Positions 44,800-50,381 are shown, counted from the first letter of the stretch. The stretch is DNA of 64,000 nucleotides from Octopus sinensis (GCF_006345805.1 NC_043016.1:28334001-28398000); one strand, 5' to 3'. Notes: a model not told the origin generated them from the sequence alone. Numbers and translations: made by a program.

Positions 44800-44908
44800 T
44801 CAATGAGGAGATTTCATATTCTTTATACAAAGTAAACATGCTAATCCAGTGTGATCTGGTTCTAAATTGATACTTTGTACAATGCTGTTTTCTAAGACAA
44901 TGGAATAA
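44800..44908 (-). CDS. PRDX5: PRDX5-like last exon (YSIVLE...[20 protein letters not shown])
   Basis: ttccag|T TAT...TGA; 109 nt. Confidence 0.92.
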
Positions 44909-47900
44909 CTGGAAAAGAAAATGAGAAAAGAGAAATCATAAATCGATTATTATGTATACACACACACACAACAGCAACAGCAACAACAACAACTACTACA
45001 TACATACAATATTTTAAACAGAGCTAGAATAGAGTGAAGAAAATTCAAGGAGCTTTTATCTCTGTTAGCAACCGAAGGTTTCACGAAGATTGTAATCATG
45101 CAATTCTACATGGTAGTGAGATGTAGGGCTTGAATGCAGAGCACATGTGGAGCCTAGAGAAGAATGAGGCTAGTATACTCTACTGGATGTGCAATGTGAG
45201 TGTGCATGTGCAACAAAGTGTGTTGATAGAAAAGTTAGGCATAAGAAGAATGAATTGAAGAAGACTGCACTGGGTTGGTCATGTTCTGCAGATGGATGTA
45301 GACAGCTCCATAAAGAAGTGCCAATCACTCAAAGTGGATGGAACTCGTGGAAGAGGGAGACCCAGGAAGACATGGGACAAAGCACTGAAGGATAACCTCA
45401 GGACACTGAGGAGTTGACATGGACCGAAATACCTAGCGCCTTGCTCTACTCAAGAAGACCCATCTTCCACTGCAGAATTGTTAATGCTTCCCCACCCCTA
45501 CTGAAGTAGACTGACCAGTAACATCCCCGTGTTGGTGTCATGTAAAAAGCTTCCATGCGGGCACTTCTGCTCATGCAACATAAAAAGCACCCAACATATT
45601 CTGTGAAGTGGTTGCCATTAGGAAGGGCATTCAGCCATAGAAATCAAGCAAAATCTGGTGCACCTCTCCACCTTGCTAGTTCTGGTTAAACTGTCCAACC
45701 CATGCAAGCATGGAAAACAGATGTTAAATGATAATGATGATGTATTTTAAATAGGGTAACATTTTAAAACTTATTTCACTGCATGAAGTCCTTTAGAAAA
45801 TTAGGTGTCATAGATCATACTAGGTCATATTAATCATCTTCTGACTCTGAAATGAAAGTGATTCCAGAACCAATTCCAGAGAAGATATTTGAGCATAAAA
45901 AATACTGGCAGTTTTGTCAGCGTGAGCAATGGCCTTATAAAGAAATAATGAACTGACACAGTCAGATGGGTCAGTCTGCGAAGGTACACCTTTTTGTTGC
46001 AGTACCATAGAGATGACAAAATACGTTGTCATCATGGGACATATCGATGGCGAGATGGGTTTGGTGTTGATGTAGTCAATAACAAGTGGATTCCAGGACA
46101 GTCATTTTTCTGAATGGCATGGTATTTTTTTTTTTTACATCGTGTCACATAGTGAGGTAGTACCTTGATGACATTTTTGGGTGGCTGCCTAATCACGTGT
46201 GATATCTTCCATAGAAATATGATATAAACTACAATATTGGTTGTATCTTGGAACTCTGAGGGCTTCATTGTCTCTTTTGCTGATTAGATATTAAGTAGCA
46301 ATCTCCTATCCTTGTAATGCGAATGCATAGCTTTCAAAGTGTGATGTGATGTAGCAGTTATGAACTCAAGAGAGTCTTCAATAGGGAGGAGTTACCTGAG
46401 GACTCTGCCTCCATGATCCTCCCAGGAATAGGTGGAGAAGATGGTTGGGGGATATGTGTGTGTGTTTGTGTGTACCCATGTCTAGACATCATACGATGTT
46501 GTAAATGGCTATCATCATCATACAAACAAGATTGTTTCCAGTGTTTCACAAAAATATGTCTAACTATAGAAAATATCTTGCTTGGAAACAGGTGAGGGTT
46601 GACAAATGAAAGAGCATTGGTAGTAGCAACTGACCATTGTTGTCACCATTAACAACAATCTCAAATATATATATATATATATGAAAATAAGACAAACCGT
46701 TTTGATCTGATATTGCCAAGTAATTTTGTACAATCTAATTCCATTCCCAGAGCTTTTGTAAAATCACCTTTTGGATCTGCAAGCATTTTAATCTGAAAGT
46801 AGAGAAAATCTTTGAGTAATCACCACATCAATATACTACATACAATAACCACACTCACACACATATTCACATTAACAGAAGAATAAAACAGTCATTTATT
46901 CTTGTGGTAGATTCCAAAACTTTTAACAATAATTGAAAAAAAAAAGGAGTTTTATTAATGGAATATTGTTTTTTTTTTAATGTATATACAGGTGCTTATA
47001 TTTAGATGAAGAGAGAATGGTATGTTGTGATATTTGTATCTTTCACAAGGTATTATTAGCATAAATTAAGTAACCTATATAGCAGATATTTAAACAGGAC
47101 AAATTTAGCTATTTCTCTGTAGATTGAAAAAAATGACAAACAGCCATAATCGATTTTTGAATGTTATTAGATTCTCCTCAGAGGGGTCTCTATCAATTTG
47201 ACCAATCCCAGAAAAGCAAGCAGCCAATCGGTTTATACACTCAACAAATACAGTAGCTACAGAAAACTGGTGCTAGTAATTTGCATATGGTGTTTAACAC
47301 TTTATTTAAATTCAGGCACTCGTCATTGGGAATGAGGATCAAAACCTATCACAGAGATGACTAAGATGCAGCATAATTCTACATTTTTGCAGTTTGTGAT
47401 TCATCATTATCATCATCATCATTTAACGTCCGCTGTCCATGCTAGCATGGGTTGGATGATTTGATTGAGTACTGGTGAACAAGATGGCTGCATCAGGCTC
47501 CAATCTGATCTGGCAGAGTTTCTACAGCTGGATGCCCTTCCTAATGCCAACCACTCTGAGAGTGTCGTGGGTGCTTTTATATGCCACTGGCACCAGGGCT
47601 AGTCTGGCAGTACTGGCAACGGCCATGCTCAAATGGTGCTTTTTATGTACCACCTGCACAGGAGTCAGTCCAGCAGCACTGGCAATGACCTCGCTTGAAT
47701 GTTTTGTTCACGTGCCAGCGACATAAGTGGCAGTAAGACGACGCTGATACCAATCACACTCAAATGGTGCTTTTTACGTGCCACCAATATATATAGAATA
47801 TTGGTTTCAGATTTTGGCACAAGGCCAGTAGTTTTAGGGGAGGGGCCAAATCGATGAAAGGAAAAGTCAACCTTGGTGAAATTTGAATTCAGAATGTAGA

Positions 47901-50381
47901 GATAGACGAAATTCTGCTAAGCATTTTGCCCGGTATGCTAACAATTCTGCGAGTTGAATAGTGAAATACAAAAATACATTAAACTCAAGCTTTTTCCTTA
48001 CCTTTCCTTCTGATTTAGTCTGTCGGCACCAAGCAGACATCACAAATGGATCATTGACAGAAACACAAGCTATTAAATCATATCCTGCTTTCTGCAATAA
48101 ATACAAAAGTAGTTCTGTGAGTGAGGTATTTTAGAGTCTCAATTCAGTTTACAAAAACAATATTGCTGTCTGAGGGGGACTTCATTGTGCCTGAGACCTA
48201 TAGAGACCTTGAATACTTAGAAAATTTTGGTGACCCTATATATATGTAATGCAAAATATAAATAGTAACAAACTATAAACTAAGTTTTTATTTTTCAAAA
48301 TGAAACAAAACTAAGAAGGAAAATAATGTTTATTTTTGTATATTTCCACTTTATTTATATTTGAAAAGTTTTCTCCTGCTTTATTTCATGGCAAAGTCTT
48401 TGATCAGATCCTCAAAATTAATCTTAAGTAACAAATTTGCTGCTACACTTAGTAAAGATAAAGCATCTCAAATATTATTTAACAAATTTTAAAATAATTT
48501 CTTTGGTGTAATAAACTATTTACCATTTCCTTGTTGCTCCCACTTCCTTTGATACCCTAAGCACATGCTTATTTTTCTAAATGGTTAATCTAGCATTGCT
48601 GAGACTAAACACAAAATTTTACTTTTCTGAACTCAAGATGTTGCATTTTACACAGGAAATGACAAAGATCTGTGTTAATTAGTAATTCATAGCATTAGTG
48701 ATGGCTAAAGCACAGAAGACATATCCAATAGTGCAAAACAGGTGTATTAAATGTAACAGAAATGGCAATAGTGATGTAGTCTGAGAGGTATAATATATCT
48801 ATGGAGTTGGTGCAGGATTAGGAATGAGGGAGTGAGTATTTATATACATGTGTATGTATTATCCTCCTCATTCTGATTCTCATTATCATAATTTAATATG
48901 CCCTTTTCCATGCAGGCATGGGACGGATGGTTTGACAGGATCTAGTAAACTGCAGAGCTGCAGTGAGCTCCAGTGTCAGCTTTGGCATAGTCTCTTTGTT
49001 TAGATGACCTTCCTAATGCCAATCTCTTTACAGAGTGTATTGGGTCCTTTTTTTGTGTCAGTGAAACTAGTGAGGTCATAGAAAAGGGAAAATAAATTCC
49101 CTAAAAGTAGACGGGGAGAGGAGAGCATTAGGGATTATGTACGTGTGTATCAGTGCACATGCGCATGTATGCATTTTACTTACTCGAAATGCCTGATAGT
49201 GGTTAATATATTCAGGAATATGAGCCTGAAATGATAATAATAATAACAACAATAAAAATAGTGACAATATTCTATACTTCGGAAAAACAACAATAATATT
49301 CAATTATAGAGAAGTGTTAATCAAACAATTATTCATTTAATAATCACATGTGTATATAAACAAACTTACATTTATTTATTTGTTTTCTGTATTTTTATCA
49401 TTTATTGGTATATTTCATGGCAGATGGAAACATATTGCAGCTAAAATACAAATATTTTGTAGGTCTGCAGAAAAATCTGAACTCAAACAGCAACACTTGT
49501 TTGTGTCAAACCATGAAAGGCGCTTCTACTTGGTTGATCAACATACTAGTAATAACAGTCAAATATTCAAATCAAATCTTAATTAATGAAAGATACAGTG
49601 TATAATGTCTTAAATATACTTTTGAATATAAGTGTTCTTAGTCAAAGTTACTACTAAATAAATTATTGATCCGATAATAAAATCTTTACATGGTAGTTCA
49701 CTCTGCAAGAAACAGCAGGTAAATCTCCCTCAATACACATCTCACCGTATATTAACTTGAATCTATAAAAACTTCCTATTTTAAAGTGATCTAAATTAAA
49801 ACCTTTATTAAAATTCCATATTAATTTATGTTCTGAAAACCAGCTAAATAATGTAAAAGTTATTTTACTAAATTCCTCATTATTTTCAAAAGTAATTCAA
49901 ACACAGGCAGTGTATTTCAACAGAAATATCCTAGTCATATGACTTAGCTTCCAGATCTTTCCATTAGATTTGTTTTAATTCTTCTGATGCCAATCCACCT
50001 GAGACCACCTTTGGTTCCATAATTCAAACACCTTGTTTGAAAGTGATTCAAATCAAAACCTTCCATCAAAATCAATGTTAATTTATGTTCCAAACACTTA
50101 TTCTTCATAATTTTCAAAATTAATTGAAATGAGAATTGTATTCTTAACAGAAATATGGTAACAAAAGAGTGAAAGACTTAGAAGAGAACTTTCTGTGAAG
50201 TTTAAATAACAATATATTTTTTAGAGTTACTTACGTTAGAACAGCCGGGTGTGAAAGCTCCAACAACAGAAAATAAAACCCCTTTTTTACTGCGATATAG
50301 TTCTGATATATTTACAGATTCAACAGAATTATTTATACGTTCAAATAACATAATTTCTGGAAGCTGAGAACCCACTTGTAG
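44800..50381 (-). CDS. PRDX5: Peroxiredoxin-5-like protein, divergent, spliced (5 coding exons, 5'-partial)
   Basis: Exons 50381-50235, 49225-49184, 48091-48002, 46792-46698 and 44908-44800 join in frame to [160 protein letters not shown]. This is collinear with PRDX5; orthology versus paralogy is unresolved. Confidence 0.92.
45040..45742 (+). mobile_element. Degraded 5'-truncated RTE LINE in PRDX5-like intron
   Basis: RT C-terminal remnants (ggaagagggagacccaggaagacatggg = GRGRPRKTW) and family tail with (GAT)n. Confidence 0.75.
46698..46792 (-). CDS. PRDX5: PRDX5-like exon ([32 protein letters not shown])
   Basis: tttcag|ATT...CG|gtttgt; 95 nt; carries the catalytic Arg. Confidence 0.93.
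47400..47790 (-). mobile_element. RTE 3' tail with three to four ~65-bp units (same subfamily as 1675-2120)
   Basis: Unit-by-unit similarity to 1839-2100. Confidence 0.8.
48002..48091 (-). CDS. PRDX5: PRDX5-like exon ([30 protein letters not shown])
   Basis: ttgcag|AAA...AAG|gtaagg; 90 nt. Confidence 0.94.
48360..48800 (-). mobile_element. Degraded hAT transposase C-terminal fragment
   Basis: Minus: [34 protein letters not shown]; upstream boundary approximate. Confidence 0.5.
49184..49225 (-). CDS. PRDX5: PRDX5-like short exon ([14 protein letters not shown])
   Basis: tttcag|GCT...CGA|gtaagt; 42 nt; aligns to THLPGFVEQAEALK. Confidence 0.88.
50235..50381 (-). CDS. PRDX5: PRDX5-like exon with peroxidatic Cys (VVGAFTPGC)
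   Basis: caacag|CTA...AAC|gtaagt on minus; 147 nt. Confidence 0.93.

Follow-up and report, generated by a model that had tools for sequence, protein, structure and literature searches.

A PRDX5 paralogue of molluscs and annelids with a broken peroxiredoxin signature and an invariant C-terminal CLLC motif

Background

Peroxiredoxins are defined by a Pxxx(T/S)xxC motif together with an active-site Arg, and databases use this signature to class proteins as peroxiredoxins. A 64,000-nucleotide stretch of the Octopus sinensis genome (GCF_006345805.1 NC_043016.1:28334001-28398000, hereafter "the window") carries on its minus strand, between positions 50381 and 44800, the larger part of a peroxiredoxin-5 (PRDX5)-like gene, whose product has Val at the first position of this motif and, in the sequence GLACLLC, a second Cys shortly after the residue that corresponds to the resolving Cys of human PRDX5. 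The locus is already annotated (XP_029648697.1, "peroxiredoxin-5, mitochondrial [Octopus sinensis]"; CAI9734521.1 in O. vulgaris), and its departure from ordinary PRDX5 is absent from the annotation. It raises the question of what such a protein is: an ordinary peroxidase, a decaying duplicate, or a functional and specialised paralogue of PRDX5, as had been proposed from an inspection of the DNA without database searches (the sequence-only reading). Our analysis revealed that the fold and the family are ordinary; the surprise is a defining motif that is consistently disrupted in two phyla, with the CxxC invariant.

The active site of the octopus protein

According to Poole and Nelson, PxxxTxxC is the essential active-site motif for recognising peroxiredoxins (PMC4749874). 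In the octopus protein Pxxx(T/S)xxC is replaced by V-GAF-T-PG-C. The position of the conserved Pro (human P40) is occupied by Val67 (GTT, 50264-50262; all codons of this gene are on the minus strand), followed by the active-site Thr71 (ACA, 50252-50250; human Thr44) and the peroxidatic Cys74 (TGT, 50243-50241; human C47). Together with this Cys, the protein possesses the catalytic Arg152 (human R127), whose codon is split between 46699-46698 and 44908, and a resolving Cys at the position of human C151. The latter is Cys176 (TGT, 44838-44836), the first residue of Cys176-Leu-Leu-Cys179 (TGT TTA CTT TGT, 44838-44827), in which Cys179 (TGT, 44829-44827) corresponds to human A154. HMMER alignment to human PRDX5 chains places PGAFTPGC and GLTCSL at the corresponding places, which bears out the contrast with VGAFTPGC and GLACLLC drawn in the sequence-only reading, and the codon positions given there for Val67, Cys74, Cys176 and Cys179 are all exact. 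Further Cys residues are Cys112 (in AWC, 48028-48026), found in octopods only, Cys141 (in LDC; TGT, 46732-46730), which is typical of molluscs and takes the place of L116, which in the human protein belongs to the active-site pocket, and Cys99, which is also present in canonical PRDX5 (the equivalent of human C72).

The Pfam Redoxin family (PF08534) matches exons 2, 4 and 5 of the gene, the identical database protein P0169 carries precomputed matches to PF08534 and PF00578, and exon 2 by itself retrieves human PRDX5 chains. The best sequence matches in the PDB are all of the Prx5 type: 2XHF (E 2e-50), 2WFC and human PRDX5. A monomer model built with AlphaFold2 (AF2) from a 24-sequence alignment of the clade described below exhibits the Prx5 fold (mean pLDDT 74.7), with CLLC in the terminal helix 175-182, and a Foldseek search with this model ranked 2xhf_A first (TM 0.82 on the target), followed by the Arenicola and human PRDX5 structures (TM 0.79-0.85 to Prx5 structures). 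CLLC is thus predicted in the last helix (pLDDT below 50), unlike the redox-active CxxC of thioredoxin/glutaredoxin-type oxidoreductases, which lies at the N-terminus of helix alpha-1; in the octopus protein that active-site position is taken by the peroxidatic Cys. The rest of the Prx5 pocket, namely the Arg/Lys position, His78 and GAF-PGC, is kept in the clade. We therefore assign the octopus protein to the Prx5 subfamily by predicted fold, descent and most of its residues, although it fails the formal signature at the Pro.

A PRDX5 paralogue of molluscs and annelids

A search of 1.84 billion representative proteins with exon 2 as the query returned a 100% match (P0001) as well as full-length relatives with the same oddities, and the clade was gathered first with a mussel member as the query and subsequently with profiles built from molluscan and annelid sequences. 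It comprises about 55 proteins with V, L, I or M (or P) before GAF, with xPGC, and with a C-terminal GLxCLLC. Molluscs are represented by bivalves (among them the protobranch Solemya), patellogastropods, vetigastropods, caenogastropods, heterobranchs, a chiton, a cuttlefish, Octopus and Argonauta, and annelids by Capitella, Paralvinella, Alvinella and Dimorphilus. In the profile search complete clade proteins scored 286-325 bits and canonical PRDX5 proteins about 250 bits or less, the sole intermediate score (268 bits) belonging to a truncated Haliotis isoform; among the named matches of the profile searches CLLC was found in none outside molluscs and annelids.

Phylogenetic analysis by maximum likelihood recovered the CLLC proteins as monophyletic both in a tree of 67 rows, 31 of them CLLC proteins (ultrafast bootstrap/Shimodaira-Hasegawa approximate likelihood ratio test (SH-aLRT) 100/99, stem 0.56), and in a tree of 75 rows that includes 39 (SH-aLRT 99). 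The canonical PRDX5 proteins of Octopus, Ostrea, Liolophura and Owenia fall outside the clade in both trees, so that the Val/CLLC proteins stand as one separate group, and inside it annelids and molluscs form a branch each, in rough agreement with the species tree. The gene structure agrees independently with the tree, as two differences in intron position are paralogue-specific: variant genes (octopus, Argonauta, chiton) have exons of 14 and 30 codons in succession and leave a 32-codon exon unsplit, whereas in canonical genes (octopus, chiton, oyster) the 14 and 30 codons are fused to 44 and the 32 codons (IRMLAD...RSKR) are split into 13 and 19. The monophyly of the clade and its paralogue-specific gene structure together place the duplication before the split between molluscs and annelids. 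The clade is thus an old PRDX5 paralogue, retained beside canonical PRDX5 since before these phyla diverged, and the window gene is a paralogue rather than an orthologue of vertebrate PRDX5.

Searches of the octopus genome with the Redoxin profile and with proteins identified exactly two loci of the PRDX5 type, the window gene on contig C20 and a second one on contig C3. The second, canonical copy, for which the sequence-only reading had advised a search, is therefore present; it has open exons with proper splice sites, reads VPGAFTPTC, and bears a single Cys in GIELTCSA. Its protein is 49.7% identical to the window protein, versus 55-60% to coral and insect PRDX5, and from these comparisons we regard it as the true octopus counterpart of human PRDX5. 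The two octopus genes lie on different chromosome-scale contigs. In the chiton Liolophura sinensis both are found on CM072725.1 (L020, L021), the variant at about 10.00 Mb and the canonical gene at about 6.57 Mb, in the same orientation and 3.4 Mb apart; a check for a tandem origin revealed no PRDX5 neighbour within 10 kb of the oyster canonical gene.

The breadth of the clade bears on the possibility that the window gene is a decaying duplicate or that its odd residues are errors of assembly or annotation. Two observations could be taken to favour it. One is the 164-aa O. vulgaris isoform P0001 (CAI9734522.1), whose reading frame continues past the intron 4 donor (GK, then VRKKLEF...) and which lacks the C-terminal third from Arg152 to CLLC, either as an artefact of annotation or as a model with a retained intron; the other is a truncated exon-2 fragment on an unplaced contig (see below). 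Against it, the identical protein is encoded in two Octopus assemblies, near-identical database entries exist for O. bimaculoides and Argonauta hians, the six exons are open with canonical splice sites, and the same residues recur across roughly 55 species-level sequences. Val and CLLC extend beyond this assembly, to O. vulgaris, O. bimaculoides, Argonauta, cuttlefish, bivalves, gastropods, the chiton and annelids. The test for selection was carried out with the Octopus and Argonauta coding sequences, which have identical exon boundaries: dN is 0.06, dS 0.65-1.27 and dN/dS 0.05-0.09, i.e. the window gene is under strong purifying selection. The O. sinensis-O. vulgaris pair was uninformative for this purpose, the loci being 91-100% identical and the proteins the same. 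Cross-species conservation, open exons and dN/dS already refute decay or assembly error, to which we attach virtually no probability. Conversely, the functional, specialised PRDX5 paralogue of the sequence-only reading is supported by this conservation, by the canonical second copy, by the separate clade and by the dN/dS ratio.

Erosion of the active-site tetrad and conservation of three cysteines

We aligned 51 members of the clade with 135 other Prx5-type proteins. Position 40 (human numbering, also for the next two) is Pro in 133/135 canonical sequences, while the clade has Val in 34 members, Leu in 13, Met in two, Ile in one and Pro in one. Position 44 is Thr in 134/135 canonical sequences; in the clade Thr is found in 42 members, Ser in three, Val in two, Asn in two, and Ile and Leu in one each. 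Position 127 is Arg in all 135 canonical sequences and either Arg (33) or Lys (18) in the clade, all 18 carriers of Lys being caenogastropod or heterobranch gastropods. The full Pro-Thr/Ser-Cys-Arg set is present in 0/51 clade members versus 91/92 canonical animal sequences (the latter initially numbered 93 rows, one of which, P0156, was a misfiled clade member); the one canonical exception is a Dreissena protein described below. Molluscs have lost the Pro and mostly kept the Thr, and annelids have mostly kept the Pro and lost the Thr; three further annelid-type members, beyond the 51, retain Pro and have Val or Asn in place of Thr. The retention of Thr and Arg stressed in the sequence-only reading is true of the octopus protein, but it is not general in the clade: most annelids and a few molluscs have another residue in place of Thr, and many gastropods have Lys in place of Arg. 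Judging from the alignment, the departure from the standard peroxidase site is wider than the sequence-only reading recognised.

The cysteines behave in the opposite manner. Cys176 and Leu177 are present in 51/51 members, Cys179 in 50/51 and Ile180 in 49/51, and Cys74 and Leu178 are invariant or nearly so; deviation at positions 74 and 179 is confined to 2XHF, a His-tagged construct made for crystallisation, with Ser at both. Among canonical sequences Cys179, Leu177 and Ile180 each occur in at most 1%. The minimum number of state changes on the tree is four for Pro, three for Thr, and one each for Arg and for Cys179. A single, never reversed gain of Cys179, together with invariant Cys74 and Cys176 and with repeated erosion of the residues to which the peroxidatic thiol owes its exceptional speed, suggests that the triad of cysteines has been under selection, rather than maximal reactivity towards peroxide. 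The invariance of both its cysteines shows that CLLC matters, not in what way; the roles suggested for it in the sequence-only reading (altered resolving chemistry, metal binding or a redox relay) are conjectural.

These patterns bear on the simplest alternative, according to which the octopus protein is an ordinary atypical 2-Cys peroxidase that tolerates Val, with Cys179 and Leu177 in a structural role, and acts as the mitochondrial PRDX5 while the canonical copy operates elsewhere (subfunctionalisation by location only). It agrees with the retention of Thr71, Cys74 and Arg152 and with the location of Cys176 at the position of human C151, and a canonical-type protein of Dreissena polymorpha (P0224) that falls outside the CLLC clade has independently changed its Pro to Val (IVGAFTPTC). 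It also fits the predicted localisation: both paralogues have basic leaders, and tails of the -SQL/-KQL type are found in canonical proteins only. On the other hand, it leaves unexplained why Cys179, Leu177 and Ile180, so rare in canonical sequences, should have stayed invariant or nearly so for over 500 million years, and selection for fast reduction of peroxide would be hard to reconcile with a tetrad that has been eroded repeatedly (Thr to Val, Asn, Ile or Leu; Arg to Lys in 18/51). We regard this alternative as possible, and on balance doubtful.

With respect to localisation, the leader of the clade proteins starts with Met and has a median length of 30 residues with 5.6 Lys plus Arg and 0.7 Asp plus Glu, and the 27-aa leader encoded by exon 1 of the octopus gene is likewise basic and resembles a presequence. 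The tail after Cys179 is basic as well (median 13 residues, 3.1 Lys plus Arg), and a strict pattern for a C-terminus resembling the peroxisomal targeting signal PTS1 matched 0/51 clade members. Canonical PRDX5 proteins have a similar leader and a short tail that often ends in -SQL, -KQL or -SLL. It is plausible from these features that the variant is confined to mitochondria.

Another alternative is that the clade proteins are no longer peroxidases, and that their invariant cysteines serve as ligands of a metal or Fe-S cluster, or react with sulfur species such as persulfide or sulfane sulfur in mitochondria. The erosion of the tetrad is in line with it, as are the three invariant Cys residues, two of them in a CxxC, and a fourth Cys in the pocket (Cys141, at the position of human L116) in 46/51 members; moreover, a cyanobacterial peroxiredoxin has been reported to reduce sulfane sulfur via its two cysteines (PMC9426444). 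However, Cys141 is replaced by Ser in the other 5/51, i.e. in Solemya and most annelid members (Dimorphilus P0337 keeps the Cys), so there would be no universal fourth ligand. In addition, a metal site would not typically have Leu-Leu between its cysteines, the remaining Prx5 pocket is conserved, and 2XHF has been described only as a peroxiredoxin 5. We find this alternative improbable.

A possible three-cysteine disulfide relay

The octopus variant probably performs redox chemistry different from that of ordinary PRDX5. The reading that we prefer, and on which our judgement is evenly balanced, is a three-cysteine disulfide relay with weakened peroxidase chemistry, as suggested by the residues conserved in the clade. 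Cys74 would remain the reactive thiol in a less activating pocket, where it would react with peroxide more slowly or less selectively than in canonical PRDX5. Once oxidised, it would form the usual disulfide with Cys176. Cys179, one helical turn past Cys176, could then attack Cys176 and move the disulfide to Cys176-Cys179; Cys74 would thereby be freed, and the C-L-L-C disulfide could be passed to a reductant or to a client protein.

Several points weigh against such a relay. The chief reason for caution is the invariant Leu-Leu between the two cysteines, which is unlike known redox-active CxxC motifs and suggests a role in packing. The octopus protein itself retains Thr and Arg, and hence could have kept its competence as a peroxidase. 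In the AF2 model pLDDT falls below 50 at the peroxidatic Cys loop (70-74) and at 171-187, too low to fix the relative positions of the three cysteines. A control model of canonical oyster PRDX5, built from an equally deep alignment, is likewise weak at this loop and around the resolving Cys, and because of that the low values are uninformative; we therefore rejected them as a sign of a special conformation. Mitochondrial targeting is predicted from composition, the searchable literature holds no biochemical data for any member of the clade, and transcript support for the octopus gene itself is limited to the annotated RefSeq and ENA models. For an orthologue, an RNA-derived Logan contig of 1105 bp contains the uninterrupted coding sequence of an oyster-type member and is a spliced transcript.

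Beside the relay, we tentatively propose a bolder possibility, which we nonetheless think unlikely: the clade as a whole could be a spiralian-specific, PRDX5-derived mitochondrial factor that handles thiol-disulfide exchange, persulfides or metal/Fe-S, outside peroxidase function, and that depends on Cys74, Cys176 and Cys179 rather than on the Pro-Thr-Arg pocket. If true, this would explain the erosion of the pocket beside an unchanging triad.

Structure of the gene and other features of the window and the genome

Within the window the gene comprises five minus-strand exons, which join in frame to 483 nt encoding 160 aa and a TGA stop. The borders conform to AG/GT throughout, except that the last exon ends at the stop and has no GT donor, which confirms the clean splice sites and intact frame noted from the sequence. 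Coding exon 2 (50381-50235) has 49 codons (LQVG...PGCSN, with the active-site VVGAFTPGC), an AG acceptor and a GTAAGT donor in phase 0; it matches the Pfam Redoxin profile with 26.9 bits and is 100% identical to residues 28-76 of P0169. Exon 3 (49225-49184), also flanked by splice sites, has 14 codons and is followed by the paralogue-specific intron. Exon 4 (48091-48002) has 30 codons, including those of Cys99 and Cys112, and a partial Redoxin match. Exon 5 (46792-46698; 95 nt) encodes Cys141 and ends two bases into the Arg152 codon, and exon 6 (44908-44800) encodes GLACLLC and the stop (TGA, 44802-44800). The 160-aa product of the sequence-only reading is correct as far as the window goes, and is not the whole protein. 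Exon 1, for which enumeration of ATG-to-donor frames and exact peptide words yielded no match inside the window, lies on the minus strand 2.65 kb beyond its end (G000:C20:28400652-28400732; L012:2652-2732) and encodes 27 aa from the ATG to a gtaatt donor. The full protein thus has 187 aa, encoded in six open exons with canonical splice sites and a first intron of about 16.3 kb, and it is identical to P0169.

Intron 1 contains open frames with matches to Exo_endo_phos_2 (E 5e-11) and RVT_1 (E 6e-14) at 59662-61728 on the plus strand, which represent a fragment of a non-LTR (LINE-type) retrotransposon antisense to the PRDX5-like gene. Long microsatellites of the AT/TA and TATG types are found at 24788-25207, 38301-39185, 58660-59095, 59692-59921 and 62850-63318, three of them in intron 1. 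Elsewhere in the window, at 17293-17941, there is a GC-rich array of tandem repeats whose unit measures 62/123 bp (about 10.5 and 5.3 copies, with 89-90% matches), which gives rise to spurious long open reading frames at 17170-18048.

In the C3 gene a second, partial copy of the 44-codon exon (HLPGYIEKHNELKKKGITSINCVAVNDPFVMK...) lies about 330 bp downstream of the first (L009:7341-7442, minus strand; G000:C3:141479340-141479441) and ceases to match it after VMK; a pseudo-exon and an alternative exon are both possible. A 265-bp copy of the junction between intron 1 and exon 2 of the window gene, 83% identical, is located on an unplaced 21.7-kb contig (L018:922-1174, G000:C45). It covers exon 2 up to the 23rd residue and then diverges, and is either a fragment of the gene or part of a collapsed haplotig. 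The remaining Redoxin-profile matches were rejected as PRDX5 candidates: a weak one on C9 (L007:1501-1662) is a thioredoxin-like exon with WCPPC (nucleoredoxin type), and those on C12468, C8845 and C1493 show only chance-level tblastn similarity to the window protein (E >1), C12468 (L003) being stop-rich on the translated strand, which may differ from the strand of the match.

Significance

The clade is more than 500 million years old and spans two large phyla, and in every member the signature is broken and the three cysteines have never been lost. It therefore constitutes a natural experiment on which parts of the peroxiredoxin active site serve which role, and it may represent an unrecognised redox function in the mitochondria of molluscs and annelids. 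Clade members are all annotated as plain "peroxiredoxin-5, mitochondrial(-like)"; owing to this shared annotation, studies of expression and stress in oyster, mussel, clam, abalone and octopus may conflate two genes. We found no description of the clade or of its features in the literature searched, which did not cover papers in subscription journals, so that a prior description is possible.

Comparison with known systems

The closest known relative of the octopus protein in both sequence and fold is the "peroxiredoxin 5" of Alvinella pompejana (PDB 2XHF, released 2011), which belongs to the same clade. The two share Val at the Pro position, HIPEY and a GLAC-LL-x C-terminus. They differ in that 2XHF has Ser at the peroxidatic position and at the second Cys of CLLC, Val in place of the catalytic Thr, and no Cys corresponding to LDC; its Ser residues were probably engineered, since the related Paralvinella has Cys at both positions. 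The entry is described as peroxiredoxin 5 only, and our search for a functional paper on it yielded none, the code appearing solely in papers on other subjects (two of them on B-factor/flexibility methods).

Peroxiredoxins that hand on their disulfide within one polypeptide are known. The hybrid Prx5-glutaredoxin of Haemophilus influenzae (1NM3), which matches the octopus protein in sequence and fold, hands it to a further Cys/CxxC in the same polypeptide, and in the archaeal three-cysteine peroxiredoxins of Aeropyrum and Pyrococcus it is passed to an additional Cys in the same chain. In these systems the extra Cys resides in a fused glutaredoxin domain or in a long C-terminal arm, whereas in the octopus protein it stands three residues past the resolving Cys, within the Prx5 core, and a relay is put forward here as a proposal only.

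Human PRDX5 (1HD2 and 1OC3, among other structures) shares with the octopus protein the fold, the length, an N-terminal leader and about 43-44% identity, with the peroxidatic Cys, Thr, Arg and resolving Cys aligned. The human protein reads PGAFTPGC, has only one Cys in GLTCSL, and ends in -SQL. In the octopus protein Pro is replaced by Val, A154 and L116 by Cys, S152 by Leu and G54 by Glu, and the tail is basic and lacks a PTS1. The canonical PRDX5 proteins of Spiralia (octopus C3, Ostrea P0303, Liolophura P0301 and Arenicola marina 2WFC) have the same fold and are about 50% identical to the variant, from which they are distinguished by the full Pro-Thr-Cys-Arg tetrad, a single resolving Cys and different intron positions.

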